Shown: positions 1 to 23,272 of the stretch, piece after piece | Position numbering within the stretch: position 1 is the first letter of the stretch | How the letters are laid out: each line of letters opens with the position of its first letter | From: Selaginella moellendorffii | Taxonomy: Eukaryota; Plantae; Lycopodiophyta | Assembly (NCBI RefSeq): GCF_000143415.4 | Contig: NW_003314451.1 | Span: 1 to 23,272, forward strand | DNA: 23,272 nt | Reading direction: 5' to 3' | Notes under the pieces: generated by a model | Told to the model about the DNA's origin: nothing | What the model saw: the letters and a program-made list of their open reading frames with translations, nothing else | Databases searched by the model: none | Translations under genes and position numbers: made by a program

Positions 1-129
1 ATGATTACTTACATAACAAAGCTAAATCAATGGTGCTTGACATACACCCCAGGATCTTCATCTTGCTCCATGATCTCAAGTACAACATTTGGAAGCTTGC
101 ATGTGAGGAAACCCTGGATAACCACAGCG

Positions 130-1196: not shown

Positions 1197-1232
1197 TAGC
1201 ATTGTCGATAGCTAATGCTATCGACAATGCTA
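1197..1232. repeat. Perfect 16-bp inverted repeat (hairpin) with 4-nt loop
   Basis: TAGCATTGTCGATAGC-taat-GCTATCGACAATGCTA. Confidence 0.95.
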
Positions 1233-1430
1233 CGTTGCCAATGCCATTCGCAAATTGCTAAGACCGTATGCAGAAGGGCTCACTATTGGCACCATTGCTA
1301 CTAATGGTAAATGGTATGAATTAAGTTTTTATTAATGACATATTTTATTTATAATTTGAAGAGCAAAAGGGATCATGGGATCAAAGTTGATGACTTAACT
1401 AGGAGTTAATGACTGTTATTTATTCAGACT

Positions 1431-1723
1431 TTCTATGAGAAAGAGAAAGAGTGAGCCATATAAATTGTTGAAAATTGATATTTTACTAGTTCTTATGTTT
1501 ATATATAGATCTGGAAATATTGAGAATCCAAAAGCACCCACTTTCCTATTTTAATAACCAACTTATGATTTGGGGGATCAAAGAGTTATTAAAATAGGAA
1601 AGTATAAATTATTTTCCCTTTTATAAGTGCTTTTGGATTCCAGACACATATATAAACATAAGAACTAATAAAATATCATTTTTTAGCAATTTAGATGGCT
1701 CACTCTTTCTCTTTCTCAAAGAA
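1431..1723. repeat. ~290-bp AT-rich fold-back (long inverted repeat), MITE-like
   Basis: The left arm TGAGAAAGAGAAAGAGTGAGCCATATAAATTG...GTTCTTATGTTTATATAT...GAATCCAAAAGCAC pairs with the right arm GTGCTTTTGGATTC...ATATATAAACATAAGAAC...ATGGCTCACTCTTTCTCTTTCTCA. There is an inner perfect 19-bp pair ACTTTCCTATTTTAATAAC / GTTATTAAAATAGGAAAGT. No TSD was identified with confidence. Confidence 0.85.
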
Positions 1724-3039
1724 GAACATGTATCTCACATATTAGTAGGAGGAAGCAAATATCACTAAAACACATCCATTATATTACTTACAAGAGTAAT
1801 TTCAATATTATACAACTTTTCTAAGTGAAAAAAGTTGAGGTAAAGGCCTTTGAGGTAGAAGTAGAGGTTGTTTTCAAGTGGATGATGTTAGGTCATAGTA
1901 AATACATCATGAGTTTATAAAGTTCTTAGATCAATTTTCACTTTTCTTGCAAGTTTGAGTGCAAAAAGCTTGCTTAGTATCCTAACCAATTTGATGGGGG
2001 AAGCTGAAAAATTCATGTAAGTGTTGATATTTCTCAATAATGAATATTGGGTAAATTAGTGGAGATGAAACTTTAACTTGTGCATTTTCATCTAGCTAGC
2101 ATAAGTAAATCTTTGGAACATATCCCATTCTCATAGCGGAAAACTTATAAACAAAAGTCTATATGTAAAAGCTTTTTATATGTAACTCTTTTTCCTTTGT
2201 ATGTTAGGCACATTCTGTGAAATATAAGTATTATTCTTGCATTCAATATAGACTTGCAATAAGAACACTACATTAGATTGATGGCTAGGGCTGTTTGTTT
2301 TTTCTTGCTTGGGTGTGTTGTCATCCATATATAGTGCTATTAGCAAGTAGCAACAAATGCCTTCAAAGGGTAAAACTATAATTTATATATTATGTCAGAA
2401 AGGTTTTCATTAATGAAAAGTATCATTCCATGCAAAAGTTACAATCAATGCCAAAAATAAATAAACTCCTCCCCAAGTTATGTGATATGTAATGTTATAA
2501 AACTATATGGAGCATCGACTCACAAAAAAAGTTATAACTCTGAAAATAAGCAAATAAAATACTTATAGCTAAGGTTCTTCTCAAAATGTGAGATGTGAAG
2601 TTATTCACCATTGCTATGCACACAGCTTCACTTTACATATTGCCATTAGTTGCTTAAGCTTATATTTCTCAACATAATTTAGAGGAGGAGGAGGTGATGA
2701 CTTGCATTTGGAGATTTTAATCTCTAAGCCTTGCATTGAGATAATGAGTTTATCCTTAAATTTTAAAAACATAGGAAATTAATTTTATATATAAGTTGTA
2801 GCATAATGTTTCATAAGTCTATTTCTAACACTCTTATGAGCCTTATATTGTGTAACCTAAATATCATTATAAAGTTCCTTAAACACTTTTATGAGTTTAG
2901 AGCTTCTACCTTCACCATCAAAGCCTTCACCTCCATCTACACCATGTAATGTGGAGTATCCACCATAGCCTTGACCAATTGGAGCCTTCATGATGTTACA
3001 TAGAATTTGCTCATTTGTGAATTTGCATCACACTTGAAG

Positions 3040-3290
3040 CTCTTCATTCACCATTTTATTCCTAATCTCCTTGTGTTGCACTTCCTCACATAGAGGCACC
3101 TCCTCACATGGAAGCACATCGTCCACCTCCTTAGTTTTGTCTTTCCTCACATAAGTCACATTTTCCATTTCCTTATATTGCACTTTTTCCTCCATCTCCT
3201 CATATTGCATATAGAAGCATCTCCTCTGCCTCCTCATATGAAGGCACCTTCTCTATTTTCGTGTGTTGCACCTCCTCATATGGAGGGAGC
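3040..3290. repeat. Degenerate short tandem repeats (CACCTCCTCA(C/T)AT units)
   Basis: Recurring GTGTTGCAC(T/C)TCCTCA(C/T)AT and GGCACCTCCTCACAT; on the minus strand these read as EEVPLCEEVQHKE-like repeats. Confidence 0.55.
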
Positions 3291-3424
3291 TCTGAATCCT
3301 TTAGCATCTAGGAGTTCTAGATTTTCCAGCACTTCATGAGTGTAGCGCACGTGGTTTTGACCCTTTATCCTATGGTGATTTACCATAGGATAACACCACA
3401 AAGCGGAACCTAAACCCTCTTTGT

Positions 3425-3475
3425 GCCACGTGACAGATGCCACGTGTCACATGCCACGTGTCCATGCCACGTGTC
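3425..3475. promoter_or_regulatory. Cluster of four GCCACGTG G-box/ABRE-like motifs in the LTR
   Basis: CACGTG at 3427, 3441, 3455 and 3468 (spacing 14, 14, 13), plus one at 3348. The motif identity is clear; function is untested. Confidence 0.55.
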
Positions 3476-4223
3476 TATAGAAACCCGAGGTTCAGGGCCT
3501 TGGGCCACTGAACGAAGGAACGGTGCCAAACTCCCAAGCGTGGAGCCAAGGAGTGATGGAACCGGACCACGGAGCAACTCCCGAGCATACAGCCCAAGGA
3601 GCGAAGGGACAGGAGCCCGGAGCGACTTGGAACAGTCCTAGAGCAACCAGCATCCCAATGCCAGGACCAGCACGCAAAACGGAGCCAAACAGAGTCTGGC
3701 GCTATTTCGGCATACCGGTGGCCTAACGCGAGGATATGGGTACTCCACCAACTAGCATGGAATGGAACTTGGGCTTAGACCCAAGCCGGACGCAGAACAA
3801 GGACAGGCACGCAAGCGGGAGCTAGACTATGCCTCAGGTTGGTCGGCCATGCCCGACCTACCCACTATCCCTACTATACATTTGGAACCCCCCACAGCCC
3901 CCCCCCCTTGAGGAACACACGCTTTGGGCTTTCACCCCAAGCCTCCCTTAGTATCAGGAGTTAGTCTCTGGGACAAACTCGAAACTTACTAAATATGGAA
4001 TGTCCTTAGATTGCGAATTTGGACACGGGACAAACACCATTGTGTTCAGGCCGATCTCTACATTCTGTAGATATGCCAAATGAGCAAATCTGGACACTTT
4101 CCATAAATAGCATTTGGGACCGAAATGAGACTAACACAAAGGGCATGATAGCAAGGGTGTTTGGCAGACACGGTAAGCTATCATCTAGCGATGTTGAGGG
4201 ACCAATCTCAATATCGCGGGGGT

Positions 4224-4497
4224 TCTTGATACTAGCAAGTGCAAGCCAATGACACAAGTTTCTCAAACCAGGCCGAGTATGCTCAGCAAGAAACACATAG
4301 GGTTCCTACCTTATGTTTATCCAATCTAAGTGCATGTTCATTGACCAGTTTCTCAACTAGTCTTGATACTAGCAAGTGCAAGCCAATGACACAAGTTTCT
4401 CAAACCAGGCCGAGTATGCTCAGCAAGAAACACATAGGGTTCCTACCTTATGTTTATCCAATCTAAGTGCATGTTCATTGACCAGTTTCTCAACTAG
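4224..4497. repeat. 137-bp tandem duplication within the 3' LTR only
   Basis: TCTTGATACTAGCAAG...TCTCAACTAG at 4224-4360 and again at 4361-4497. It is single-copy in the other LTR and accounts exactly for 1281 vs 1144 bp. Confidence 0.95.
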
Positions 4498-4621
4498 TTC
4501 AAGTGGGAACTGATAACGGGTCCAGCAATACCGACCTCCTGCCATCGTGGCAGTAAGGTAAGAGTGTCCGTAAGGACTGGCCGACAGGTAACTTTCGATA
4601 CCTGAAGTCACATTCGCGACA

Positions 4622-4634
4622 CTCTCCCCCCCTT
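4622..4634 (-). other. Polypurine tract of element 1
   Basis: Minus strand AAGGGGGGGAGAG lies directly before the TGTCGCG start of the 3' LTR. Confidence 0.9.
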
Positions 4635-7600
4635 GGGAAGATCGACGTCCTCGTCGATGCATACTCGAGTCTAGAATACCGCCAAGGAAACAACTCCATA
4701 AAAAGTTCACGGTACTCACACTATGTGAGAAATGCACCAACTTAAATGAGTTAGGGGGAACCTCTTTGTCTAACGCGGATGCGCTACCAGCTCAGACACC
4801 TTCCGGCCGTCGCCGACAAGGAAATGACCAATGGAGTCAGCCACCCCTGCTGCTCTGGGAGTCACCCAGCTTACAAAAGTGTGATATGCCCCTGCCCGCA
4901 AGGACATAGAGAGAGAAGCCAGAGGCCCCAACCCTCCTAAGCAAAGAAACCAAACCCGTCGGTAAGGTTTAGATAGACTACTGTAAACAGGCAGTTAGAG
5001 TTGTTTACACGGTCACGCCCTTTTAACGGAACGAGGAACATCGACAAAGAGGCGGGTTATGTGACCAGTCGACAGTAGCTACCCCATGACTAGAGATTTC
5101 AACATGCACACGAAGTGCCGAAGCCAGTCTGCCTATACTGGCCCAAACTCAAAGATCAATATATATGGACTATATCAAAGTCATAAACAATGATATCTTA
5201 GAGATTGAATTATCAGTGAATAAAGCTTTAAATTAGAACACAAAAGTATTCCAAGTAAGTTATCATCCAATAAACTAGTATTATAGTGCAAGAACCACCA
5301 AGATCAGCATAATTGGTAAACATAGGAATCACCATCCAACAAAATTCAATAGCAAGTAGATCATCAAGGAAACTCAATGATAAAGTTTAACTATTAAAGA
5401 TTGCAGACAGAATGCTAAACAACTTACGAAAGATAACTCAAAGAACACAAAGTATCATTGATTGACAAGCAAAATGCTCGCGAATGTATCACCCAAAGGA
5501 AATAACATCCAAATCTATCAAAACTAACTCAAGCAATAATCAACAGAACAAAATGAATGTTGCAAAGCAAACAAATATAGTGTTCATGCCAATCATCGCA
5601 CTAGCCAATCCAGATAGATCCCAGCCAATAACACCAAGGAACTCAAGTTGCCTAAGCAAGTGTTAGCAACATCCTACTGATGTCTCAAACCCAAGAGACC
5701 AATCCAGAGCAAACCACAAAGAACATGTGGTATTGCGAAAAGCCAAAAGCCATCAAAGAGAACAACTAACTATCATGAAAGATCGTCAATCAGCCCATCA
5801 ATGTAGTGATGTATAATCATCGTTGAAGAAAGAATCTACCATCCCGAAGAATAGCAAATAATTCCAAACCAACAATAATCAAGCAAAACTTGTGATAAGG
5901 ATAATCAACTACCCTAGATGATAGTCAATCATCACCAATGATTGCCAGATGCAAAAACCAACTTCAACATCGAAGCTAATGAGCCAAAATGCCTTCCCCA
6001 ACAACTTCTAACAAATGGAACAATGAGCACAAAACTCAAGAACCAAAAGCTCGAAGAAGCCTATAACTAAGTCTTGCCTAATAATGATCACGAGTTTCAT
6101 AGAAGCTAACTTCAATGTTAAAGAAGAAATCATGGTGCAACCCACAATATCTTCCTCAACACATCCATAAGCCAAACTTCATAATGCCAAAGCTAATGAA
6201 AAGCATTTTTGCATCAATCCAAAAGCTAAGCATAACGAAGCTATGCTTAACAAGTGATCATCAAACGATCCTCCATGAATCCATCTATAGCAAGACGTAA
6301 CTCACTTCATAACAAGCTCAAAAAGAATCATTAATGATTGCTATATTCCGAACTCAAATCCAGCAAGGACTCAACATTCTAATATCGATCACTAACTCTT
6401 CTTCTCGTAGAGTTAGCATAGTCCACGACTAAATCACTTTTCAAGGAAAAGCTAAAGCTCAACCCTCTACTAAATAATCTCGTCTAGAACACAACTAACT
6501 CAACTTGCCACTCAGTTCGTTTGAACGTCAACACAGTTGCTAACTAGCAAATGCACGAATGCCAACAACACAAAGCTATAGCCAAATCATCAACACTATA
6601 TTCATCAAGACTAATGAAACTCAATATCAATCCTAGGAAGGATATCTCATTTCACTCAGATCTCAATATCAACAATGTCAATGACAAGGCATCACCTCAA
6701 TTCTATCAACATCAGAACAAAGCTAAAAGAAAGCAAGAGTGAATCACCACTCAAAACTCTCTTGCAACCAAGCTAACCAAAGTCGAAGATACTTTAGTCA
6801 GTATCCGAGACTAGTTCTTCAACATTACTCAGGTACAGATAACACTTCCTCAAGGAGTGCATCACCACATCCAAGACTCAATGAAATCCAACACTACGGA
6901 CTAAATGTAACCAAATGATATCGACAGAGGTAGAGTCGACATGTCAACATGGAAAACCCATGTATGTCTAACGACACGATCCTCCGCAACACTATTCGGT
7001 AAAGCAAGCCCACCACTGCTAAATCATCATCGAGCAAAGCAAGTGTCAACGGTCCTTGATGAAGTCTACAAGTAATCACTAGTCGCAAAGCAACTAACAA
7101 TCACTCCTCAACTTGCGTTCACAAGACTCGAACACCAACTCTTGTCATCAAGTTATATACTTATCTAGCATAAACATAATACCTCAAACATGAGATAAAA
7201 GTTCATGGACAAGCACAAACTAAATGACCACTCGAATCCAACTCAACCGTAATAAGCTCACTAAAACATTTAGCCACTAGCTCTGAGCATGCCTTGAAGA
7301 GGCTAGCTATGCATGATCAACACTCAGTCGAAACTAAAGTGAAGACCATGAGATGAACTCACATCGGTACACAACCTCCTCATAGACAAAGCTATAGTAC
7401 GGGTACCAACATCTCAACCTCTAACAACTAAGTTGGACATCACCATCCTTAGCCAAGGTGCAAGGCTGCCAAGACTAAATCAAGATCAGTGAGAGCTCAC
7501 TACTCTCATAGAGTCTTAGCGAAATGCAAGGTGCAACCTGCCACCGAGCATAATGCTACAAAAGAAAGGCATAAGAGTCACCTTTCTTAGAAAAGTGCAG

Positions 7601-9607
7601 CGGCCACTTTTCTACACCAACTCCAGACTCTATCCAACTCAATTGCTTTAGCCCCAAAAGTTAGCATCCCTTTCGGGTCACATCATACAAACTACCTACT
7701 AAGATCTAAGCCAACCGAAGTCAACTCCAACCCCTTCACTAGTTTGTACTGGCTTTCGAAAATGGAATGGTTTTCAAGCAAAGTGATCAATAGATCAGCC
7801 ATTGGAAAAGTCTAAGAAAATTTGTGGAAAATTTTCCATCCTAGAGAAAGAATGACTCTCAGTCCAGGAATGCAAACTTTCAGGACTCAACCAACTTCCT
7901 CCTACCAACAACTTCACATAGATTCACCTCAACACAAATTCTCATGACCCAATAGCATGCTTAAGCATCGAACATCTTTGCCCATTTTCCTGACATCCAA
8001 CTCCGACATCCGCAAAGTGCAAAATGAACATCCAAGGCTTGATCACGAAGACCACATCTTCGGATATCCACATTGCACTAACACTCTTCTTCAATCATCT
8101 TCAAGATCCAATGTGAAGCCAAAACACTAACAAGAAAAATGACATGGAAAAATCAAGGTCCAAGGAAAATTCCTCATCACTTGAAATAACAATGCCACTT
8201 CCACTAACACAAGTGCTAGTGACGTCAATGCCCCAACTCCACATCTTCTCCATCCAACAATCTACTCCAAGTGCTAACGGATCAACCGACAAGCTATAGC
8301 AAATGAATGCTACAACCCTTTTCCAACACCTTAGTGGGCAAACTTAAGGAAACAAGGAACCAACTTAAGCTTAGCATAATGGACCACCATTGAGAATCCA
8401 GTCAAAGCTACTACAATGCTACTTCGTGTAAGTAGACTAGCTTGTCCATCAACCACTTTGGGGTTGATCATCATTTACCCAAGCAACTTCGTAAACGCAT
8501 TACTCTTTATCACATGGATATGATATAAGCATCACAATGACTTGATCATCAATTGAGCAACACCACGAGCAATGCCAATGTCATTACTACAAATGTTTAT
8601 GTGAGTATCAAGTGTCAACTCGATTCGACCAAATGCAACATAAATGCCACACTCCACCAATAGAGGTTTACGACACCCAACACCACTAACTTTTGTTCAC
8701 AACACGGACAAGCTCATGCCACTCTCTTTCCGACCAAACTCAACACTAATCCAACACCAAGCTACTCAAGGAGCAATAGCAAGGTTCCCCGGAAAAGAAT
8801 TGAGCATTGCAACCCAAGTCTTTCAATAGCGAGCCTAGACAAAATGGTTTAGTGTTTCACCACTATCCATCCCATAACTCACCACTTGTAAGACCATCAC
8901 TTCCAACATGCATCAAGGTAGGGACTCTTGATTGCATAATGTGAACACAAGCAATGAGTTAACACCTCATTGCAAATCATCTCTCCAAGAAGAGAAAATG
9001 ATTTACGTATTTGATCCTCCGTCCTCGATGACTCTCTTTTCGGTCTCATCTTTGACCAAACCTCAAGCTTGCTTTCGCACTGCCTTCAGTTCAATCGAAG
9101 AAAAGTTTATGAGAGAGCACGGCAATGATTACTTGAACCAATAGACTATTCCCTACAGTCTTGACTGATCCAATTATAATCATGCCTAGGAAGGATCCAC
9201 TAGTGCCGTGCTAAACAGCTATGGACCAGCCTATTTGCCACTCATAGCAAACTCAGGGAAAGTTTACTTTCACCCACGGTACATGGAACAACTCATGGAA
9301 CCACTGGAACCATCGATAGGCTTACATTAATCCTGCCAACTTAAAGTGTAACCTCAAGTTGCTAATGCGCCTCACTCACGAGCCCAAGCTCAAACTCGTG
9401 CAAATGGAACATCTCCAATCCATCCTATGAGCCCAAGCGCAAGCTCACATCATAAGGTACAACAAGGTAACCCAAAACCTATCCCAAGGAACCAATGCGA
9501 AGTCTTTGCACCAAAACGTGTACCCACTCGGATCATCGTTTTCATCTCTGCGTATGCAACGAGACTAGTTGCCCAATCTCATTGAATAGTACTCGCTGAG
9601 ACTCATC

Positions 9608-9618
9608 CTCTGATACCA
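9608..9618 (-). other. Primer-binding site (tRNA-iMet) of element 1
   Basis: Minus strand TGGTATCAGAG, 2 nt after the CA end of the 5' LTR. Confidence 0.92.
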
Positions 9619-9620
9619 AA

Positions 9621-10764
9621 TGTAGCGCACGTGGTTTTGACCCTTTATCCTATGGTGATTTACCATAGGATAACACCACAAAGCGGAACCTAAACCCTCT
9701 TTGTGCCACGTGACAGATGCCACGTGTCACATGCCACGTGTCCATGCCACGTGTCCATAGAAACCCGAGGTTCAGGGCCTTGGGCCACTGAACGAAGGAA
9801 CGGTGCCAAACTCCCAAGCGTGGAGCCAAGGAGTGATGGAACCGGACCACGGAGCAACTCCCGAGCATACAGCCCAAGGAGCGAAGGGACAGGAGCCCGG
9901 AGCGACTTGGAACAGTCCTAGAGCAACCAGCATCCCAATGCCAGGACCAGCACGCAAAACGGAGCCAAACAGAGTCTGGCGCTATTTCGGCATACCGGTG
10001 GCCTAACGCGAGGATATGGGTACTCCACCAACTAGCATGGAATGGAACTTGGGCTTAGACCCAAGCCGGACGCAGAACAAGGACAGGCACGCAAGCGGGA
10101 GCTAGACTATGCCTCAGGTTGGTCGGCCATGCCCGACCTACCCACTATCCCTACTATACATTTGGAACCCCCCACAGCCCCCCCCCCTTGAGGAACACAC
10201 GCTTTGGGCTTTCACCCCAAGCCTCCCTTAGTATCAGGAGTTAGTCTCTGGGACAAACTCGAAACTTACTAAATATGGAATGTCCTTAGATTGCGAATTT
10301 GGACACGGGACAAACACCATTGTGTTCAGGCCGATCTCTACATTCTGTAGATATGCCAAATGAGCAAATCTGGACACTTTCCATAAATAGCATTTGGGAC
10401 CGAAATGAGACTAACACAAAGGGCATGATAGCAAGGGTGTTTGGCAGACACGGTAAGCTATCATCTAGCGATGTTGAGGGACCAATCTCAATATCGCGGG
10501 GGTTCTTGATACTAGCAAGTGCAAGCCAATGACACAAGTTTCTCAAACCAGGCCGAGTATGCTCAGCAAGAAACACATAGGGTTCCTACCTTATGTTTAT
10601 CCAATCTAAGTGCATGTTCATTGACCAGTTTCTCAACTAGTTCAAGTGGGAACTGATAACGGGTCCAGCAATACCGACCTCCTGCCATCGTGGCAGTAAG
10701 GTAAGAGTGTCCGTAAGGACTGGCCGACAGGTAACTTTCGATACCTGAAGTCACATTCGCGACA
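9621..10764 (-). repeat. 5' LTR of element 1 (1144 bp)
   Basis: Near-identical to 3341-4621. It is adjacent to the PBS and followed by TSD ATGAG. It carries the same G-box cluster at 9705-9755. Confidence 0.95.
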
Positions 10765-12700
10765 ATGAGACTCAAGCTCTAAATCTTACTTTTCACGTCA
10801 TACAATATAAAATTGTGTTCTAGGCTCCATTGCCCCACTATATAAGTTCTAAAAGAGTTAGCAAACAAATTCTAACACATTGAATTGAATCCTTACATTT
10901 CAATGGCAATCATTACACCATTTGTAGTGATGAAAACTCTAACTAGTGCATGTTTTTAAAGTGTTGGTGCAATTTCTTTTAATATCTCCATTTCAATAGG
11001 ATCCTCCACCAGTGGTGTTTTTATGTGATTTGTAGTGGAGTTGATTCTTCCACAATTTGTAAAGGACCAAGATCTTGTTGAAAAAATGCATATGTTTTGT
11101 GGATCTGGGGAATAGAATATAATATGGTCCTCGATATTGAAGCCATATGTACATGAATAACATGCCCATTCTAAGCCTAAAAATTCACAATACCCACCTC
11201 AATAGAGCATGAATGTTTCTCTTAGGAAACAAAAATAATAACAAATGTGTCAATAGGTAGAAATTTATTATGCCACACACAAATTAGTATTCCCGTACAT
11301 GAATTAGAACCATGCATGGTTGATCTATAAATATTGCCTCTAAATCTCCATTTACACTTTGTATAAAACACAAGTTCATATTGTTTACTATATATTTTAA
11401 AGCTTATCAGCAAAAGACTAGCTTGAAAGTATGTTTGCGTGAGTGTGGTCATGTATATGTATAGGTTGAGCAAATTCAGCAAAGTGGAGGGCATCACCCA
11501 TATGCCCCCTTCCACGTCATATAAACACATGCATAATTGACACATAAAGAATCATTACAACCACTTGTGTATAACTATAACATTCCAATGCCCCACAATT
11601 ATGCTCACTGCAATGAGCATAAAACTTATACCAATGAAAAAAGCTAAATAAATGAAAAATTACCCCACACAATAACTATCTCTATGTATTGCAATATGCC
11701 CAAGAAAAGAAACAAAAAGCCTTGACCAACAATCTAATATAAACTCCAACCTTAAGTCCACAATCAATGCAAGAACAATGCCTATATCACGTGGGAATAG
11801 CACAATATGCCCAAAACACAAAGGAACGAGAGTTACAAGTATTTGCAATCTCACTTAACCTTGATCAATATATGCTAATCTTCAAGTGCCAACATCACTC
11901 CTAAATAGCACACATGAAAGAATGGAAGTCATAACTGCTTGCATACAAAGACCTCTCACCCAAACCCTAATCAATGCATGCTCCTACTCTTCATCACACC
12001 CACCAATATGTAAAATTTGCTTTTGAAGCATATCATGCCCACATCACACCTAAGATTGTGGGAAAGCTGTTGTTCTTGGCTGGATATAAAGGAAGTGCAA
12101 TACTAAAGGCAAAAAAAACTTCACTAGATTTTTTGTGATGTCTATGTGGCAGGTTTAAATGGCATACAAATCACATTTTAATCATATAAAATGATGTACT
12201 TTAAATTCTGTTGATTCCATATCATCATATTTTCTTGTAGTGTTAGTGATATAAAAAACATATTTAACTTTACTTTTACTACATAGGCCTTGCAAAACAC
12301 CTCTGATATCTTGGATCAAACTTCCATGCTTAGTCACCTAAAACAGTACTTTTAGAAGTTCAGACTCTTAAACAACTTTAAGTAGCCTTTTATGGTCTTA
12401 TTAAACGTATTATTCCCCAGGAGTAATGGATATTTCTGCACACCCACATTGGCAAGTTGCATCAAACACAATCACTTAGCAAGTTGGCCTCAAACACAAT
12501 CACGTTTCCCCAATAACTAGCACAACTCCACCAAAAAAATATCAATAGCATTACCCCTTGATCTTGCCACTATGGAGAACAAAACGTGCCATGATACTAG
12601 TTTATATTTTCGAAGCGCAACTACACATGAAATTCGAAAAGTCAACAATCATTTTCCAGGATATAGCTTTCTAACATCAATCGGCGCTGGTGGTGATTGC

Positions 12701-14767
12701 ATGGCAGCAAAAAGTTTGGCCGAGGCAATTCGAATCTCGGACAAAGTTGCCGCAAGGTCCACGAACACAAACTCGAGCAAGGTCTGTAGGAACCAATGTA
12801 GGATCTTCTTAGCAGCGGTCGACCATGTCGGAGACTACCTCAAGCGAATCCAGGATCTCAACTTCGCGAGCACTGGGACAGCTTTCGTGTGGGACGAAAC
12901 CGTGGCTGTCCTTAAGAGAGGCCTCCATCTCCTCAAGTCGTGCCAAGAAGGCAATTGGATCGCGCGGAGCCTGCTGTTCAAGGAAAGCTGCGATGAGTTC
13001 CAGAGCATTTATACCGTCCACCTCGGTAAGATCCAAGATTGCCGAAGCTTACAACTCGTGCCTCATGAGGCAAAACTCGAACAGCATGCTGGAAGAAGCC
13101 GGAAGGAATGACAGGAAGGCGCTCATGGCTCTCGCAATGAGCCAAGAGCCGGGAAGCCTGACGACCGAGAGCGAGCAAGCCAAAGAGATACTTTGCTCCA
13201 TGCTCCTGGGAAACAAGTCAGTGATTAACCACAAGGAACTCAAGCTGACAACACACCTGGGACAAGGCGGTTTCGGAACCGTGTACGAAGCAATCTGGCT
13301 CGGTCACAAGTTTGCAGTGAAAGTCTTCCCTCAAGGTGACAAGAGCTTCGCCAAAGAGCTCGCGGTTCTCGAAGCGGACAAGCATCCCAACGTGTTGCAC
13401 ATCGCCGGTCATTCTTTCGATGAAGAGAAGCAGCGGTACTCGCTGGTGATGGAGAAGATGGACATGGACCTGGCAAACTACGTCCTCAAGAAGAACTCTC
13501 TCCCGTTGCTGTCGATCGTGGCAGTGATGCTCCAAGTTGCTACTGGCATGGCGTGGCTTCACTCGAAGAATATAATCCACTGGGACCTCAAGCCGCAGAA
13601 CATCTTGGTTGGCGAAGAAGACAACGATCTCGTGAGTATCAGGATTGCCGACTTTGGAGTCTCGAGGCCAAACTTCATCTCCTCCCAGATCGAAGCCGTT
13701 AGCATCCAAGGCACCAGGAACTTCATGGCACCGGAGGCGTGGAGCAGCGAGCGCTACACGAAAAAGGCCGACGTTTACAGCTACGGGATGCTGATTTACC
13801 AGCTTGTCACTGGAAACGTTCCGTTCGAGGACGGGATGGACATGGAGCAAGTCCTTCGAGGCAAGCGTCCTGAGATACCAGCCACCTGTCCAGAGTTCCT
13901 GTCGCAGCTCATGCGGGAATGCTGGAGCCACGATGCGAAAGAGAGGCCTTCCTTCTCGGATATCTGCGAGCGGCTGAAGCAGCTCAAGACCAGGATCATC
14001 ACTGGCATCGAGTCCATCGACGAGTTACGGGTCAAGTTGGTTGAAGTAGCCGGGTCGTATTCCTCTTCTTCGTACTCGTCGTCTTCCTCATCCTCGTCGC
14101 ACAGCAGGACTCGAGTGAACCTGGATTCTCTTGTCCAAGCGACTGAAGGGCTTTGGACCAAAAATCCTCCATCTCCCCTTGTACAGGTAAACTCTTTTGT
14201 TTTTAGTAACTTCCGGTGCTCATCGCGTTTAGTTTCAGCCGGTACCACACCGTCCTCAGCACTTCACACCAGTAGCAAAACCGGATAACAGGACCGAGCT
14301 CTTCGAACTGGTGAAGAACGGCCTCGTCAGAAACGCCTTCGAGAAAGCTCTGTCCCTGAACGATCCTTCCATGGTCTGGTGGCTTTGCACCAAGGTAATC
14401 CATTCACGTCCTCCAGCTGCTCATCAAAGCTTTGTCAGCTCAGGTGGAGCATACCGTCCTGCTTGTCTTCAGTGAATCAATGCTCATGGAACTGGCCGAG
14501 CAAATCAACACCAACTTCAAGGAAGACACTGCTCGCAGGTTGCTCTGGATCGACGAGATTGGCATCTTGCTGTTCAAAGACGTCAATGGACAGGCATGGT
14601 CATCACCTCAGGTGCTGAGGATCCTGGAGCAGCTTTCACAGAACTTCCACGGCATGATGGCTATAACACCGCCAAAGAGCGAGCTGGGGATGAAGCTGGT
14701 GAACATGCTGGGTGGCACCAACATGGGTCTCCAGGTTCGTATGAAGCTCTTCGTGTTATTCATTTGA
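12701..14767 (+). pseudogene. Copy 1: MLKL-like helical domain - TKL kinase - EDC4/VCS-C-like fusion gene, pseudogenised. Exons 12701-14186, 14239-14394, 14444-14767
   Basis: Kinase motifs GQGGFGTV, AVK, DFG, APE, DVYSYG. GT-AG phase-0 introns of 52 and 49 bp join the exons in frame. A 53-bp deletion at 13012/13013 relative to copy 2 causes a frameshift. The catalytic loop is HWDLKPQN (CGG->TGG at 13581). Confidence 0.88.
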
Positions 14768-14795
14768 TTCAAATCGTTTGTTGTCGCAGCATATC

Positions 14796-15017
14796 TGTTA
14801 GGCACCAGCTTTGACTACGTGGTCAACATCGGTCAAAGGGTATATGAAGGCATGTTAGGGTAAGGGACTTAACTTACCCTAGGGCTCACAGTGGAGTGGT
14901 GGTGCAGTGGAACTTTTGAGGTAGCTCAGGGGTGGTTGGGTGGTGAGGAACCTCAAGAGGTGGCATAGCATAATCTAGGGCAACTAGATTTTTGTCTTTT
15001 TGCGCCGGATCATAACA
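14796..15017 (+). repeat. 5' LTR of gypsy element (222 bp)
   Basis: TGTTAGGC...GATCATAACA, matches 19461-19681. Confidence 0.95.
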
Positions 15018-15018
15018 T

Positions 15019-15029
15019 TGGTATCAGAG
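15019..15029 (+). other. Primer-binding site (tRNA-iMet) of gypsy element
   Basis: TGGTATCAGAG, 1 nt after the LTR end. Confidence 0.93.
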
Positions 15030-15041
15030 AAGTTGGTTGCG

Positions 15042-18000
15042 ATGGCCGACCAAGCTGAACGCTGGAATCCTATTGTCGATGGTGGTGCCAACAATGGTGC
15101 TGACGAAGCTGCAGAGATTTAGACCATTCAAGATGTGGTTCATGAGCTGCGAGCCCTTAACCGAAATCAGTAAGAGATGCAAGATGAGATGCATGGCATG
15201 ATGGATACCATGCGTGGGCGTGTTGAGGCACTCGAGGCTGGACGGGGTAGCGCTCCAAGTAAACCTTCTTTGGTAGATCGACTCAAAATTCCAAATTTTT
15301 CCGGTGATGGTGGTGTGGACGAGTGTCTCGCTTGGCTAGCCAATGTGAAGAAGTTCTTGGCTGCTAGAGGAACTCCAGATGCAGAGGCTTTAGTGGCTAT
15401 TCCGATGGTTTTGCGTGATGCGGGTTTTCGATGGTGGAATTGGCTTGAGGAGTCCCGTGTTGTGGATAAGAAACCACCAGTGTCTACCATGGATGAGTTT
15501 GAGGTTGCTTTTCATTTATGTTTTGCCCCTCATTACGACATGGAGAATGCTCGTACAGAACTTTGACATTTTCAGCAAAGGAAAATGATGCTCGGGGACT
15601 ATATTGAGAAGCTTACTTGCTTGATTAGTCGTGTTCCAACGAAGGATCCAGATCAGAACAAGTCCTACTTCATTGATGGCCTACATAGTGAGAGCATGCG
15701 GCAACACTTGCGTCATTCTCAGCCTACAAAGAGTTTGAAGGAGCTCTTTGATGTGGCTCGTCGACTTGACAATGATAAGCACAAGTCTCGCAAGCGTTTG
15801 CGGAGTCCTTCTGTCGAGAATCGTCGTGATGATCACCATGGACACAAGGATGGGAACAAGCATCACAAATTGAAGTCAGTGGTGACTACTTCGGATGCAA
15901 AGGGGTCCAAGAAGTAGAAGTTCTTTGTGAAGAATTATAGACAAGGTTGTCATCATTGCAGCGAATTTGGACACTACAAGGCTGATTGTCCGCAGTTGAA
16001 GAACAAGCAGCAGGACAAGAAGAATGGCCAATCTTCTTCTCACGGTAAGTCCGATACTAAAAAGTTGTAAACTTTGCAGCGTGAGGATGAGGAGAACGAC
16101 CATTCCGGTTGGAGGAAGCGACTTTCGATCGTTGCTCATCAGCTCAACTGTGTGTGGAACAAGATGGAGCTCGAGGATATGCGTGAATCAGCTTTAATGC
16201 TGGAGGGTGTGTTCCGTGGCGATCTAATGCGGATTTTACTAGATAGTGGGAGCGATGACAACTTTGTTTCTGCTGCGGAGCATGGCCTGGTCACACGTGG
16301 AGTTCTTCCATACACAGTGGAAGGTGCAGCCACCTTTACTCAACATTTCGATGCTTGTGTCGAGGGGCTGGAAGTGTTGGTTGGCAAAACCACACTTGTG
16401 AAGACTTTTTATCTCACGGATATCCATCGTGTGGATCTCATTCTTGGGATGCCATGGTTGGCGAAGGTGGATCCAGAGATAAAGTGGAGCATTAAGCGTA
16501 TCTCGCTGGAGTATGGTGGCGTTAAAGATGTGTGGTTTAGCGAGGGCGTTCAACCACCAGTTGTTATGCTCTCTGCTACATCTTTGAAACGGGCTTGTCG
16601 TAATAGAAAAGCACTTTCAAGTTACTTGCTGTTTGTTCGTGACTTGGGGGACCAAGGCACGTGTGGGGGAGAAGCAATAGTACAGGATGTACTTGACGAG
16701 TTTTCTGATGTTTTTCCATATGAACTTCCTCATGGATTACCTCCGTTACAAGGTGTGGAGCATGGGATTACATTAGAGCCGGGGATGTGGCCAATTTACC
16801 AGTGTCCATTTTGGTTAAGTTATGCGCAGGAGCAAGAAGTTCAACGACAAGTCAAGGAGTTACTTAAGTTTGGATTTATTCAGCCAAGTAAGTCTCCGTT
16901 TGGTGCTCCAGTCTTGCTTGTGAAGAAGAAAGACGGTTCAATGCGGATGTGTATTGACTACCGTGCTTTAAACAAGAAGACAGTGAAGGACAAGATGCCG
17001 ATGCCACGTGTGGATGATATCTTGGACAAGCTTGGTGAAGCACGAGTGTTTACTAAGATTGATCTGAGGAGTGGATATCATCAGATTGCAATGGATGATG
17101 CATCTATCTCCAAGACGGCATTCAACACAAGTTTCGGACATTTTGAGTTTACCGTTATGCCGTTTGGTTTGACGAATGCACCGGCCACATTTACTCGGTT
17201 GATGACGGAGGTATTTGGGCGTTATCTTCATGAGTTTGTGGAGATTTTCTTGGACGATATTCTTGTTTTTAGCAAAGAATATGGAGGAGCATAGGGTGCA
17301 TTTGCGCAAGGTTCTTTTGTTACTTCGAGATAGCAAACTTTATGCGAAGAAGAGCAAATGTGAATTTGCAAAGTCGGAGGTGGAATATCTAGACCATATT
17401 GTGACATCTAAGGGTGTCAAGACAGATCCAAGGAAGGTGGCTATGATGGAAAATTGGCCTACACTGACTACAATGGCCGAGTTGCGCAGTTTTCTTGGTA
17501 TGGCTAGTTACTACCGACGTTTCCAGCATAAGTTTGCAGAGGTGGCTATTCCTTTGACATGGTTGTTACGCAAGAATGTGCCATTCGAGTGGAAGAAGCC
17601 ACAAGAGGAGAGTTTTGTGGTGCTGAAATGATTGTTGAGCGAGGCTTTAGTGCTTCGCATTGCTGATCCATTGAAACCTTACGAGGTGACATGCGATGCG
17701 AGTGGTTATGCACTGGGAGGAGTTTTTATGCAAGAGGGACAGCCTATTGCATATGAGAGTCGAACTTTGAATTCCGCAAAGCAATACTATTCCACATATG
17801 AGCAAGAGTTACTCTCTATTGTTCATGCTTTGTAGACGTGGCGGCACTATCTTTATGGTGCAATGTTCGTGGTGTTGACAGATCACAAACCACTTGTGTA
17901 TCTTTTCACACAGAAGGAGTTGAACACTAGGCAAGCTCGTTGGATGGTCAAACTCATGGAGTTTGGGGAGTTTCCTATTGAGCATTGTCCGGGAAAATCC

Positions 18001-19386
18001 AATGTGGTGGCAGATGCTTTATCTCGTGTTCGTCATGTGACGACATTACAAACACGATTTTGTCATCATTTGAGTAAGGTGGTCAGTGGGTTTGGACAGT
18101 TGGTTGAGCATGCTCAGGCTCAGGATGCTGAGGTGGCCTCTTTGCGTGACCAGATGGAAGCTCCTTTCTCATTGGTGGATGGGATTCTCTATTACAATGG
18201 CCGTGTATATTTGCCACGGGTGGATGCGTTAATTACTCAAGTTTTATTCCACTATCATGATCGTCCAGAGGCCGGTCATTTTGGGGGGAAGAAGACGTAT
18301 AAATTGATTAAGCGCAACTTTTATTGGAGGAATATGAAGGTTGATATCCTCAAGTATTGTAAATCATGCGAGCTTTGTCAGCGGGTTAAGGTGCCACGAG
18401 AGAAGCCGGGGGGACTTTTGCAACCTTTACCTATTCCTCAGAGCCGTTGGTGTAGTATCTCTATGGACTTCATCACTTGTTTGCCACGAACACAGAGGCA
18501 AAAGGAGCAAGTATGGGTTATAGTGGATCGGTTGACAAAGTATGTGCGGTTGTTGGCTCTTCGGAAGATTGTCACTGCCTCAAACTTGGCTGCGGTTTAC
18601 TTGGAGAAGGTTTTTCCTGATTTTGGTTTGCCAAAGGACATCATTAGTGATCGAGATTCAAAGTTCACCAGTGGATTTTGGAAAAGCTTTGCAAAGGTTA
18701 TACAAATGACTTTGAAACTCTCGAGTGGAGGTCATCCTTAGACAGATGGGCAAACCGAGCGTGTAAATCAAATGGTGGAGGATATGCTACATTGTAGCAT
18801 TGGTCAAAGGCAAGGATAGTGGGATTTTTATCTTCCGTTGGTGCAATTTGCTTACAACAATAGCCAACACAGTGGAACCAAGCTAAGTCCTTACTTTGCC
18901 ATATTTGGAAGGCATCCTCGAATAGTAGTGGAGTTGGGATTGCATTTGAGTAAAGACATTCAAGATAAGCTTGATTCCAAGGCAACTGATCTGGCCACAG
19001 AACTTGATGAGATCTTGGTGGTGTGCAAACAGAATTTGCAAGCAGCTCAGGATAGAGCGGAGAAGTTTGCCAATGAGCATCACCAATTCCAGGAATATAA
19101 GGTGGGTGGTCTGATCTTTGTACGCGTGATCTTTCCGTCAAGTGAGCGGTAGAACACCTTGGTGCCTTTACGGACAGGGAAGAGTGATAAACTTTCCCAT
19201 CGATATGCTAGTCCATATGAAGTGCTGGAGCACTTTGGTAAAGCGGCTTATCGGGTGTGGCTGCTAGCTGGGGTGAAAATTCATCCGGTATTTTATGTCA
19301 GCCAGTTGAAAGGTGTACTATTTCGGAGTGACGGGCCCAATGCCTCCTTGATGTATACAGCTGTGGAAGATGGACCAGAAGCTTGA
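15042..19386 (+). pseudogene. gag-pol: gag-pol polyprotein pseudogene (Gag, CCHC knuckle, aspartic protease, RT, RNase H, integrase)
   Basis: Zinc knuckle CHHCSEFGHYKADC (15948-15989). Protease [51 protein letters not shown]. RNase H CDASGYALG. Integrase H..H..CELC, SMDFI, SDRD, HP*TDGQTE, and a GPY/F-like [10 protein letters not shown]. Multiple in-frame stops and a 1-bp frameshift near 17275. Confidence 0.96.
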
Positions 19387-19447
19387 GTAGGATTCCCTAG
19401 AAAGGGTGATCACAAATTCAACTCGTCCTTGGGACAAGGACTTTGTT

Positions 19448-19459
19448 GGGGGGGAAGAA
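19448..19459 (+). other. Polypurine tract of gypsy element
   Basis: GGGGGGGAAGAA, 1 nt before the 3' LTR. Confidence 0.9.
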
Positions 19460-19460
19460 T

Positions 19461-19681
19461 TGTTAGGCGCCAGCTTTGACTACGTGGTCAACGTCAGTCA
19501 AAAGGGGGCTCAAGGGTATATGAAGGCATGTTAAGGTAAGGGACTTAACCTACCCTAGGGCTCACAGTGGAGTGGCGGCGCAATGGAGCTTTTGAGGTAG
19601 TTTGGGGGTGGTTGGGTGGTGAGGTGGTGTAGCATAATCTAGGGCAACTAGATTTTTGTCTTTTTGCGCCGGATCATAACA
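19461..19681 (+). repeat. 3' LTR of gypsy element (221 bp)
   Basis: TGTTAGGC...GATCATAACA; about 14 substitutions and two ~11-12 bp indels versus the 5' LTR (manual count). Confidence 0.95.
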
Positions 19682-19929
19682 GTATCTGAGTTGCAGTTGA
19701 CAGCAAAGTTCAACACATGAGAGTCCTTGGAGGATACTTTCCAGTGGAACACCGGTAGTTTCGGAGTATTTCGATGTTCTAATTTCCTGCCTGCCAAAAG
19801 CATCAACCATGCTTCATGAAAGAACCATAAAGAACTTACCAATTCCCGTTCTGAACTTTGAGTAAACACCTATCATCGTTTCATCCTGCGACAAATATCC
19901 AAGAACAAAGCTCTCACCATTCTTTAGTT

Positions 19930-20478
19930 TTAAACTTGAGTAGACGGGTGAAGATCCCAACCTTTTCGATCTAGCAGCAGCAGTAGCAAGCAGCCTTGGC
20001 AGCTTCCGCAGCAGCGTAGACACCAGTAATTCTCGTCGCCACAGCATCGAGGATCATTGCTCTCCGCTCAAAGAACGACTTTGCCACTTTCAGCTTCTCG
20101 GATCCCCATAGGCTTGTAGACGATCCCGGCAGCTAGCCGCTGCTTCATGACCTTGGCTGGACGAACGTAAGCATCGCCCAGCTTGGCCTTCAATCTCTTT
20201 GGCACCTGAAAATCCAATCGACCACCACCACCACCCCCCGCTTTGTTGCGCTTGCCCGGATTCTTGGAGCCGGTGCTCTCGCCGTGCAAGGACGAAGAAT
20301 TTGCTGGAGCCACACCAGCAAGCGCCTTGTCTTGCTCTTTGATCCCTTCCTTCTTGGCGTGCTCGGACCAGAGATCGCGCGATGCGAACAATGCTGAGTA
20401 CGTGGGGCTCTTCTTGGCGTAGAGGAAGGGATTGGGACGTGGATTGTGGATGTAGAGGCGCAACGAGCGAGCTCCACT
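19930..20478 (-). pseudogene. Frameshifted copy of an unknown Lys/Ala-rich protein gene, convergent with kinase copy 1
   Basis: GC-rich and protein-like (RLYIHNPRPNPFLYAKKSPTY...LDFQVPKRLKAKLGDAYVRPAKVMKQRLAAGIVYK). Its 3' part aligns with the open frame at 23087-23272 but has small indels (about +2, -1, +4, +1). Possible splice acceptor TTCTTGCAG near 20478. Confidence 0.5.
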
Positions 20479-20588
20479 GCAAGAACCCTATCGAAATATC
20501 GATATCGAGGATGACAAGAAAAGCCATTTCTTATGCCTGATTAAAGTATAATTCCCAGACAAGACTTAGGATTTATAATTACTCAAAA

Positions 20589-20611
20589 GAAAAGTCCACG
20601 GTAGACTTTTC
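20589..20611. promoter_or_regulatory. Inverted GAAAAGTC-N7-GACTTTTC pair (WT-box/W-box-like) ~50 bp upstream of kinase copy 2
   Basis: Perfect 8-bp inverted repeat. GAAAAGTC is also present upstream of copy 1 (12636-12645, GAAAAGTCAA, which contains a reverse W-box TTGACT). Confidence 0.35.
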
Positions 20612-20659
20612 CCACGCTGCAAAGCAATGGAGCGGCGCTAGTGGTGATCACCGACGAGC

Positions 20660-22833
20660 ATGGCAGCAGCGAATTTGCTCGAGGCGATTCGAATCGCGGA
20701 CAAGGTTGGCACAAGATCCACGAACACAAACTCGAGCAAGGTCTGTAGAAACCAATGTAGGATCCTCATCGCGGCGGTCGGCTATGTCCGAGACTATCTC
20801 AAGCAAATCCAGGATCTCAACTTCGCGAGCAACAGGCGAGCCTTCGTATGGGACGAAACCGTGGCTGTCCTTAAAAGAGGCCTCCATCTCCTCAAGTCAT
20901 GCCAAGAGGGCGATTGGATCGCTCGGAGCCTGCTGTTTGAGGAAAGCTGCGATGATTTCCAGAGCATTTACGCCGAGATCTACAACTGCGTCGAGCTCGT
21001 CAGCGTCTATCTCTTTCAGCTGGCACCGTCCACCTCGCACAGATCCAGGATTGCCGAGGCTTACAACTCGTGCCTCATGAGGCAGAATTCGAGCAGCATG
21101 CTGGAAGAAGCCGGAAGGAACGATCGGAAGGAGCTCATGGCTCTCGCAATGAACCAAGAGCCGGGAAGCCTGACGACCGAGACAGAACGAGCCAAAGAGA
21201 TACTCTGCTCCATGCTCCTGGGAAACAAGTCAGTGATCAACCACAAGGAACTCAAGCTGAGAACACACCTGGGACAAGGAGCTTACGGAACCGTGTACGA
21301 AGCAATCTGGCTCGGTCACAAGTTCGCGGTGAAAGTCTTCGCTCAAGGTGACACCAGCTTCGCCAAAGAGCTCGCGGTTCTCGGAGCTCACAAGCATCCC
21401 AACGTGTTGCACATTGCCGGCCATTCTTTCGATGGAGAGAAGCGGCAGTACTCGCTGGTGATGGAGAAGATGGACATGGACCTGGCAAACTACCTCCTCA
21501 AGAAGAACTCCCTCTCGTTGCTGTCGATCGTGGCAGTGATGCTCCAAGTCGCTACTGGCATGGCTTGGCTTCACTCGAAGAACGTAATCCACCGGGACCT
21601 CAAGCCGCAGAACATCTTGGTTGGCGAAGAAGACAACGATCTCGTGAGTATCAGGATTGCCGACTTTGGAGTCTCGAGGCCCGATTTCATCTCCTCCCTC
21701 ATCAGCGAAGCCACCCCCAAGCAAGGCACCAGAAACTTCATGGCACCAGAAGTGTGGACCAGCGAGCGCTACACGAAGAAGGCCGACGTTTACAGCTACG
21801 GGATGCTGAGCTACCAGCTTGTCACTGGAAACATTCCGTTCAAGGTCGGGATGGACATGGAGCAAGTCCTTCGAGGCAAGCGTCCTGAGATACCAGCCAC
21901 CTGTCCAGAGTTCCTGTCGCAGCTCATGCGGGAATGCTGGAACCACGATGCGAAAGAGAGGCCTTCCTTCTCGGATATCTGCGAGCGGCTGAAGCAGCTC
22001 AAATCCAGGATCATCACTGGCACCGACTCCACCGACGAGCTACGAGCCAAGTTGGTTGAAGCAGCCAGGTCATCTTCCTCTTCTTCGTACTCGTCGTCTT
22101 CCTCGTCCTCGTCGCACAGCAGGACTCGAGTAAACCTGGATTCTCTTGTCCAAGCGACTGAGAAGCTTTGGACCCAAAATCCCCCGCCTTCCCGTGTCCA
22201 GGTAACTCTTTTGCTTTATGTAACTTCTGGAGCTCACCACCTTTGGGTTCAGCCGGTACCACACCGTCCTCACCACGTCGCACCATTACCAAAACCAGAT
22301 AAAAGGACCGAGCTCTTCGAACTGGTAAAGAACGGCCTCATCATAACGCCTTCGAGAAAGCTCTGTCCCTGAACGATCCTTCCACGGTCTNNNNNNNNNN
22401 NNNNNNNNNNNNNNNNNNNNNNNNNNNNNNNNNNNNNNNNNNNNNNNNNNNNNNNNNNNNNNNNNNNNNNNNNNNNNNNNNNNNNNNNNNCTCGTCCTTT
22501 GTCACTTAGGTGGACCATACCGTCCTGCTTGTCTTCAGTGAATCAATGCTCATGGAACTGGCCGAGCAAATGAACACCAACTTCAAGGAAGACACTGCTC
22601 GCAGGTTGCTCTGGCTCGACGAGATTGGAATCTTGCTGCTCAAAGACGTCAATGGATGGGCATGGTCATCACCTCGGATGCTGAGGATCCTGGAGCAGCT
22701 TTCACAGAACCTCCACGGCATGATGGCTACAACACCGTCAAAGAGCGAGCTGGGGATGAAGCTGGCGAAAGCGCTGGAAGGTACCAACGTGGGTCTCCAG
22801 GTTCGTATGAAGCTCTTCGTGTTATTCGTTTGA
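20660..22833 (+). CDS. Copy 2: MLKL-like helical domain - TKL/Raf-like protein kinase - EDC4/VARICOSE-C-like fusion (~673 aa if repaired). Exons 20660-22201, 22253-(gap), 22510-22833
   Basis: A 514-codon open exon 1 with GQGAYGTV, AVK, alphaC-E (FAKE), HRDLKPQN, DFG, GT..FMAPE, DVYSYG, ERPSF. A 51-bp GT-AG intron follows. Exon 3 comes after an AG acceptor and is conserved with copy 1. A 1-bp deletion at ~22344 gives a stop at 22372 as assembled. Confidence 0.85.
22391..22490. other. Assembly gap (100 N)
   Basis: Run of N. Alignment to copy 1 suggests only ~45 bp are missing (end of exon 2 and start of intron 2). Confidence 0.99.
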
Positions 22834-23086
22834 TTCAAATCGTTTGTCGTCGCAGCATGTCCGAGTTGCAGTGGACAGCAAAGCTCAATACATGAGAGTC
22901 CTCGGAGGATACTTTCCAGCGGAACACCGGTAGTTTCTGAGTATTTCGATGTTCTAATTTGCTTCAACCAATTCCCATTCTTGACTTTGAGTAAACGCCT
23001 ATCATCCTCTCATCCTGCCAGGGAAAACGTGAAGAATTCTTAAGAGACAAAAATCCAATTTAAAAGCTCTCACCATTCTTTAGTTC

Positions 23087-23272
23087 TTAAACTCGAGTAG
23101 ACGGTGAAGATCCCAACCTTTTCGATCTGGCAGCAGCAGTAGCAGCCTTGGCAGCTTCCGCAGCAGCGTAGACACCAGTAGTTCTCGTAGCCACAGCATC
23201 GAGGATCATCGATCTCCGCTCAAAGAACGATTTTGCCGCTTTCAACTTCTCGGGATCCCCATACTTGTATGG
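23087..23272 (-). CDS. 3' end of an unknown protein gene running off the window edge (partner gene, copy 2)
   Basis: Open frame PYKYGDPEKLKAAKSFFERRSMILDAVATRTTGVYAAAEAAKAATAAARSKRLGSSPSTRV*; homologous to the frameshifted 19930-20120 segment. Confidence 0.5.
   Translation of the reverse strand, partial: PYKYGDPEKLKAAKSFFERRSMILDAVATRTTGVYAAAEAAKAATAAARSKRLGSSPSTRV

Follow-up and report, generated by a model that had tools for sequence, protein, structure and literature searches.

The question raised by the locus at positions 20660-22833 of a 23,272-nucleotide stretch of the Selaginella moellendorffii genome (contig NW_003314451.1, forward strand; the whole stretch is referred to here as the window) is whether one plant gene can join an MLKL-like helical domain, an intact kinase and a piece of the mRNA-decapping scaffold EDC4/Ge-1/VARICOSE (VCS), a three-part fusion that an earlier note had read from the letters of the DNA, and what such a protein might do. 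The window holds part of a tandem, haplotype-variable S. moellendorffii gene array, and the proteins of this family, of about 685 residues, run from a predicted N-terminal helical bundle with brace-like helices through a tyrosine kinase-like (TKL) type Ser/Thr kinase and a Ser-rich linker to a C-terminal Ge-1C domain. Little doubt is attached to the identity and three-part architecture of the family; for the best explanation as a whole, in which this architecture is read as that of a kinase-fusion immune sensor, the probability is put at about 0.5. When the 514-residue product of 20660-22201 was used as the query of a protein search, ten S. moellendorffii RefSeq models came up at 81-100% identity, and the next match beyond these ten had at most 34% identity.

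The C-terminal domain is firmly identified as a diverged Ge-1C, the distal C-terminal domain of EDC4/VARICOSE, and sequence, profile, structure and intron position all support this assignment, which the earlier note had made from sequence motifs. When the exons are taken singly, the match to the Pfam profile EDC4_C (PF21289) falls below threshold; in seven spliced paralogue models it reaches 26.2-33.9 bits over profile positions 3-115 of 121, with six of the seven above the 27-bit cut-off and copy B 0.8 bit below it. An exhaustive phmmer search with residues 515-686 against 1.84 billion representatives matched 23 proteins, one of which is the kinase family itself. The best of the remainder is the EDC4 of S. 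moellendorffii (XP_024516677; E 1e-12, 36% identity), and further matches are EDC4 proteins of a liverwort, a lycophyte, a fern, gymnosperms, angiosperms and charophytes. Of the 22 non-family matches, the seventeen that were scanned are mostly Ge1_WD40+EDC4_C proteins or EDC4_C-only pieces, and none of the seventeen has a kinase domain, the combination of kinase and EDC4_C being found by this search only in the Selaginella family. A profile of the kinase-family tails aligned by hhalign to a plant EDC4 tail profile scored 99.5% (E 2.4e-22, 128 columns, 36% identity), and the kinase-family tails keep all columns that do not vary within the EDC4 set. Against PDB sequences, the kinase-family-only C-terminal profile gave no match at E <= 1; a Ge-1 match at E 5.5e-19 was obtained with a mixed alignment in which EDC4 rows predominate, and is not independent evidence. 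Pfam scans of the family proteins found no WD40 or other EDC4 regions; the family is not the EDC4 orthologue, the true one being a separate protein (P0121).

The predicted structure of the tail leads to the same assignment. Its AlphaFold (AF2) model, computed with the alignment of the tails to EDC4, has a mean predicted local distance difference test score (pLDDT) of 84 and contains eight helices in a 3+5 layout; this is the layout described for Ge-1C (PMC4320757). Foldseek ranked the Drosophila Ge-1C (2vxg) first, followed by the SPIRAL2 C-terminal domain (8hbr) and the S. pombe Pdc1 Ge-1C (4q2s), and in VIA structural alignments the model superposed on 2vxg with Z 15.2 at a root-mean-square deviation (rmsd) of 2.7 A over 130 of 131 residues, on 4q2s with Z 13.1 and on 8hbr with Z 12.9. 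A closer likeness to the C-terminal domain of TORTIFOLIA1/SPIRAL2 had been named beforehand as grounds for giving up the EDC4 assignment. The fold is indeed common to both, but that domain ranks below Ge-1 and has no sequence-level signal, Ge-1 being the better structural match and the sole match by sequence, so that this candidate was rejected.

RNA sequencing (RNA-seq), for which two stranded runs of 2026 were used at 12% sampling, shows that the kinase-EDC4-like fusion mRNA is made and spliced. Exon 1 is covered to a depth of roughly 30-100 in both runs, and it is joined to exon 2 at 22201|22253 across a phase-0 GT..AG intron of 51 nt (22202..22252, plus strand) by 49 + 32 = 81 reads, all in plus-strand orientation; contigs from two older studies (runs X1 and X5) carry the same junction. 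The step from exon 2 to exon 3 is crossed by RNA reads as well, and five reads cross intron 3 of copy C (22801..22855, plus strand, 55 nt, GT..AG). Junction reads had been proposed in the earlier note as the check on its splicing model, and they bear it out. Two observations of antisense transcription stand beside these: at 21217-21267, inside the kinase exon, opposite-orientation reads (4 + 8) skip 51 nt with CT..AC ends, which marks a spliced antisense transcript, and at 22491-23000 the RNA reads are mostly antisense. A minus-strand gene lies just downstream, at 18891-19616 of the corresponding locus on the main scaffold, which corresponds to the window from about 23088, and its 3' untranslated region may overlap the end of copy C.

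Mapping of the RefSeq proteins onto genomic loci resolved the genes cleanly into four exons, separated by phase-0 introns some 50 nt long, and extraction of the homologous exons yielded five intact open reading frames of 674-688 codons across two haplotype scaffolds, besides pseudogenes. Copies B and C lie on the 1.44-Mb scaffold GL377616.1, and X, B' and D on the second haplotype scaffold, GL377620.1; at all five loci, which are free of gaps, the four-exon gene is contiguous and open. The paralogue X (P0007) has a shortened and divergent end. The two scaffolds also differ in the order and number of family members, X - B' - A' on GL377620.1 against A - B - C on GL377616.1, and the array is thus structurally polymorphic. 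Four RefSeq isoforms (P0003, P0004, P0005 and P0006) are chimeras that join exons of adjacent paralogues over introns of 3-14 kb, and such chimeric isoforms probably reflect faulty read mapping within the repeat.

These data also bear on the reading that the fusion is an artefact of annotation or assembly, with the kinase and the EDC4-like exons belonging to separate genes. Chimeric isoforms of this kind, together with a window locus that is itself a composite across a gap with sequence errors, are what such a reading would build on; the strand-consistent exon 1-2 reads, the contigs from independent studies, the reads spanning exons 2 and 3 and the contiguity of the gene at five gap-free loci make it very improbable. 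It was rejected for the family and holds only for the join across 22391-22490.

At that join the earlier note went astray. Its kinase and linker at 20660-22833 stand, but the single continuous gene that it drew across the gap does not, since the locus is a composite of copy B at the 5' end and copy C at the 3' end, with homopolymer errors, which had been overlooked. Compared by blastn with the locus of the 686-residue RefSeq model P0002 on GL377616.1 (L001), whose exon 1 is identical to that of the window gene and which continues into a full C-terminal domain, the window falls into three collinear blocks: 10662-15973 corresponds to 1-5312 of that locus at 99.8%, 16354-22390 to 5702-11733 at 98.7%, and 22491-23272 to 18294-19076 at 99.1%. 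On GL377616.1 the flanks of the gap are 6.5 kb apart; copy B is completed there by its exons 3-4, after which come a spacer and then exons 1-2 of copy C. The gap itself is written as 100 N (22391..22490), and the sequence hidden in it includes, as a minimum, 17 nt of exon 2 together with some 35 nt of intron 2. With 99.8% identity the left flank belongs to copy B, and the right flank (22491-23272) corresponds at 99.1% to the 3' end of copy C, so the flanks are in matching register of the repeat unit and belong to different paralogues. By corrected coordinates, the plus-strand features right of the gap are exon 3 of copy C with Ge-1C-like helices 4-8 (22510..22800) and its exon 4, with a 25-residue tail and the stop codon (22856..22933).

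The left flank differs from copy B at three positions only, an A lost after 22203, an A lost after 22344 and a G for A at 22386, the last being the copy-C state; in the right flank one more A is missing, after 22503. The second of these deletions lies in exon 2 of copy B, which is cut off by the gap (22253..22390, plus strand), and leads to a stop at 22370-22372, where the 553-residue RefSeq model of the window's own gene (P0001, on a 101-kb scaffold) also ends. The missing A is present in 55/65 and 51/56 of the covering RNA reads (106/121, about 90%) and in contigs, and on this ground the frameshift is most likely an error of poor sequence at a contig end or of assembly, and at most a rare allele. 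After 22503 the A is present in all reads (14/14 and 20/20), and after 22203 in about half of the few that cover the site.

Sense reads running off the left flank supply the 17 missing bases of exon 2 and then enter copy B's own exon 3 (GTAGAGCATAC...), not the exon right of the gap. A smaller set of reads (12 + 7) joins to 22510; their left anchors are at most 48 nt long and fall within sequence common to B and C, so that they are no proof of continuity. A simple short gap was rejected because the blastn comparison with GL377616.1 and these B-type read ends contradict it. Homopolymer losses and a switch from B to C at 22386 form the signature of a tandem repeat collapsed at contig ends, and this explains the join better than a real B/C hybrid allele, which is the less likely case. 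The lesson for the window is that an assembly gap has fused two paralogues.

The kinase, in contrast to the join, looks intact, as the earlier note had read it. Within exon 1 of copy B it spans residues ~196-447 (21245..22000, plus strand), matches the Pkinase profile at E 1e-49 to 1e-52, and keeps the G-loop GQGAYGTV (205-212), the FAVK lysine K225 corresponding to the VAIK lysine, HRDLKPQN with HRD at 311-313, DFG (335-337) and APE (362-364). Judged by these motifs it looks like a catalytically complete Ser/Thr kinase of the TKL type, and with all of them present it differs from the pseudokinases of the MLKL family. Among all PDB chains the kinase-like domain of AtMLKL3 (6ka4) ranks second by sequence (E 4e-35), with MLK1, Abl and EGFR scoring level with it. 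The Ser-rich linker that follows (22001..22201, plus strand) carries poly-Ser at residues 471-487, also as previously described.

The origin of the tail can be approached through its introns. In the Selaginella EDC4 gene a phase-0 intron follows ...WLCNQ, and the kinase genes have their intron, also of phase 0, behind ...WWLCTK at the same codon position; the upstream exon boundary of the tail lies within about three codons of that in EDC4. Because a phase-0 intron stands at the matching codon in both genes, the comparison argues for capture of the last exons of a plant EDC4 gene as genomic DNA and not as processed mRNA, and since donor and recipient have this intron in common, the tail would serve as a clean, datable example of exon shuffling. 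In a maximum-likelihood tree of Ge-1C domains the seven kinase tails form one clade (100/100), and their identity to plant EDC4 is 30-36%.

Selection was estimated as dN/dS, the ratio of nonsynonymous to synonymous substitution rates, by the Nei-Gojobori method for pairs of non-allelic intact copies. Over the whole gene dS is 0.09-0.19 and dN/dS 0.39-0.76, with 0.33-0.62 in the kinase and 0.43-1.0 in Ge-1C; in the latter domain, values of 0.43-0.51 come from the more diverged pairs, where substitutions are most numerous. From these values the family appears to be young, fast-evolving and under weak purifying selection. Taken together, the dN/dS values, the tandem array, the pseudogenes and the structural differences between haplotypes make up a profile typical of immune-type genes.

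In the functional reading favoured here, the protein would be a kinase fusion of the MLKL_NTD-kinase kind (NTD, N-terminal domain), as in wheat Pm13, with the integrated Ge-1C as its specificity module. That module could act in one of two ways: it may dock the kinase on the DCP1-DCP2/VCS decapping complex in processing bodies (P-bodies), or it may offer a VCS-like surface to be bound by whatever binds VCS there, pathogen effectors included. A rust effector is known to associate with EDC4 (PMC4749346). The kinase and the helical bundle would then provide the output, through phosphorylation and possibly membrane-directed cell death. This immune-sensor mechanism is held tentatively. Doubtful, and well below it, is the fuller version in which a lycophyte kinase-fusion immune receptor evolved independently of those of grasses, with a copy of Ge-1C wired through an active kinase to an MLKL-like cell-death bundle. 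If that version were true, pathogen attack on the decapping machinery would have a long enough history and a wide enough spread among land plants for a bait to have evolved, and the protein would be without precedent as a receptor that ties P-body surveillance to an MLKL-type executioner.

For the immune-sensor proposal, the evidence on the N-terminal domain of exon 1 (residues 1-195; 20660..21244, plus strand) points both ways. Its AlphaFold model consists of helices throughout, four long ones and then three that are shorter and brace-like, and is of low confidence at pLDDT 58. Foldseek found no PDB match to this model at E <= 0.001, a profile of the paralogue alignment found nothing among PDB sequences at E <= 10, and no Pfam match to DUF1221 or MLKL_NTD was obtained. 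The VIA-wide scan gave human MLKL NTD as the best natural match, with N-termini in register (model 1-149 onto chain 2-136, 131 residues, rmsd 3.2 A), at Z 10.2. Mouse MLKL followed at Z 8.8, and the coiled-coil domains of plant Rx, NRG1 CC-R and MLA13 at Z 7-8; by calibration of the method, unrelated helical bundles can reach values of this size. A word-based search with residues 1-195 returned only paralogues and no homologues outside the family; seven of eight paralogues have a sub-threshold match to DUF7792 (best E 5.5e-4), and neighbours in the ESM Atlas include MCAfunc (template-modelling score, TM, 0.65), DUF7792-ARM proteins and fungal proteins in which a helical N-terminus precedes a kinase. 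RefSeq names the family models 'mixed lineage kinase domain-like protein'. On the model comparisons the balance tips, by a modest degree, towards an MLKL/HeLo-type bundle; the term MLKL-like used in the earlier note is thus plausible and falls short of being demonstrated.

Further results that weigh against the proposal concern the tail and the setting of the genes. In human EDC4 the binding of DCP2 and XRN1 and oligomerisation map to the proximal helical region and not to the distal part (PMC4005699), and by this mapping the captured piece is distal Ge-1C only, the proximal region being absent. In the tree, the branch that leads to the kinase-tail clade is about 2 substitutions per site long and joins the unresolved base of the streptophyte EDC4s, and the tree names neither the donor lineage nor the date of capture; with this long branch and only about a third of its residues identical to VCS, the tail may have lost the binding of VCS partners. 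Values of dN/dS below 1 are modest evidence of constraint, as the substitutions are few, and the genes adjoining the array are not immune genes.

The long branch and the low identity to EDC4 would equally suit an evolutionary by-product, in which an accident of exon shuffling added EDC4 exons to a duplicated MLKL-like kinase and the tail was kept as a stable helical cap without an EDC4-related function, and the same can be said of tail dN/dS near 1 in some pairs (1.01 for X-D, 0.76 for C-X) and of the shortened end of X/P0007. However, all five intact copies keep the four-exon reading frame and every EDC4_C-invariant residue, the diverged pairs show the lower dN/dS of 0.43-0.51 in this domain, and its confident model superposes on full-length Ge-1C, and an accident of this kind is considered improbable.

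A housekeeping or stress regulator deserves somewhat more weight than a by-product, even if it too is unlikely. Here Ge-1C would hold the active kinase at the decapping complex or in P-bodies; there the kinase would phosphorylate DCP1, DCP2 or VCS and tune decapping, and the N-terminus would be a regulatory or oligomerisation module. In fission yeast the Ge-1C of Pdc1 contacts Dcp1:Dcp2 (residues 1-95) directly, while helical leucine-rich motifs (HLMs) bind Edc3 (PMC4320757), and the C-terminal part of VCS is used as a plant P-body marker (PMC4749346); moderate expression in ordinary RNA-seq libraries and intact kinase motifs are in keeping with such a role. A core regulator would not, however, be expected in a family of one species only that is tandemly amplified, haplotype-variable and pseudogene-rich with dN/dS of 0.4-0.8. 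Should the tail still bind decapping factors or P-bodies, the protein would be either a natural bait for effectors that target P-bodies or a dedicated kinase of the decapping complex.

The window carries a further member of the family, copy A (12701..14797, plus strand), which the earlier note called copy 1 and in which the C-terminal splicing was best resolved. Its exons 2 and 3 do follow the kinase across short phase-0 GT-AG introns, and the peptide quoted there was reproduced: exon 2 (14239..14394, plus strand) encodes the end of the linker and helices 1-3 of the Ge-1C/EDC4_C-like domain (a match to positions 3-32 of the EDC4_C profile at E 0.0057), and exon 3 (14444..14734, plus strand) the rest of the helices, as placed by splice sites and domain comparison. 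Copy A is a pseudogene, with a 53-nt frameshifting deletion in the N-terminal domain that is seen in all three representations of A, both haplotype scaffolds included, with HWD in place of HRD, and with exon 4 cut after 8 nt. A degenerate plus-strand retroelement of the Ty3/gypsy type lies in this exon 4 (14797..19700, ends approximate), recognised by its protease/reverse transcriptase (16074-17294) and RNase H/integrase (17863-18741) reading frames and by long terminal repeat (LTR)-like repeats at 14836-14948 and 19512-19624 (92%); the element is also present in the main scaffold GL377616.1. Elsewhere in the window, 3423-4466 and 9703-10532 show one pattern of open reading frames twice, 6280 nt apart, and so form a long direct repeat that may represent the LTRs of another element.

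In comparing the family to known systems, the closest relative of its tail is EDC4/Ge-1/VARICOSE itself (PF21289; 2VXG; 4Q2S), with which it has in common homologous sequence, the 3+5 fold (Z 15.2 and 13.1), a C-terminal position after a Ser-rich linker and the phase-0 intron of Selaginella EDC4. Unlike EDC4, the Selaginella proteins lack WD40 and the proximal helical region and have a kinase attached, and the tail, in addition to being only 30-36% identical, has lost 5 residues from a loop and is extended by 25 residues that a fourth exon encodes. The C-terminal domain of SPIRAL2/TORTIFOLIA1 (8HBR) is alike in fold (Z 12.9, TM 0.66 by target), with sequence searches returning only EDC4-type proteins.

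The novelty of the architecture, as suggested in the earlier note, has to be stated in parts. Literature searches found no paper on a kinase+EDC4_C architecture, but the gene models are already in RefSeq and the half formed by MLKL_NTD and an active kinase is an established plant class, represented by wheat Pm13 as a functional class of resistance proteins with hundreds of members in grasses (PMC10951266). With Pm13 and kinase fusion proteins (PMC10951266, PMC11297308) the Selaginella family shares a probable four-helix-bundle-like N-terminus with brace-like helices, intact catalytic residues and its character as a lineage-specific, fast-evolving family; it differs in that Pm13 has no C-terminal integrated domain and a kinase of the RLK/Pelle LRR_8B group, whereas the Selaginella kinase is TKL/RAF-like and followed by Ge-1C. 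The MLKLs of seed plants have a HeLo-brace-pseudokinase organisation with a Ser-rich tail unlike any known domain (bioRxiv 10.1101/681015), and AtMLKL1-3 (6KA4, 6LBA) resemble the Selaginella proteins in the order of a HeLo-like bundle and a brace (in Selaginella probable ones), a TKL-type kinase fold and a Ser-rich C-terminal region. They are pseudokinases, however, where the Selaginella proteins keep their catalytic motifs, have no DUF1221 match and end in Ge-1C. Kinase fusion and MLKL-like proteins have only recently entered the picture of plant immunity and are functionally known only from cereals and Arabidopsis; beside these, Selaginella stands as a non-seed plant with an expressed, amplified kinase family that carries a piece of the decapping scaffold.

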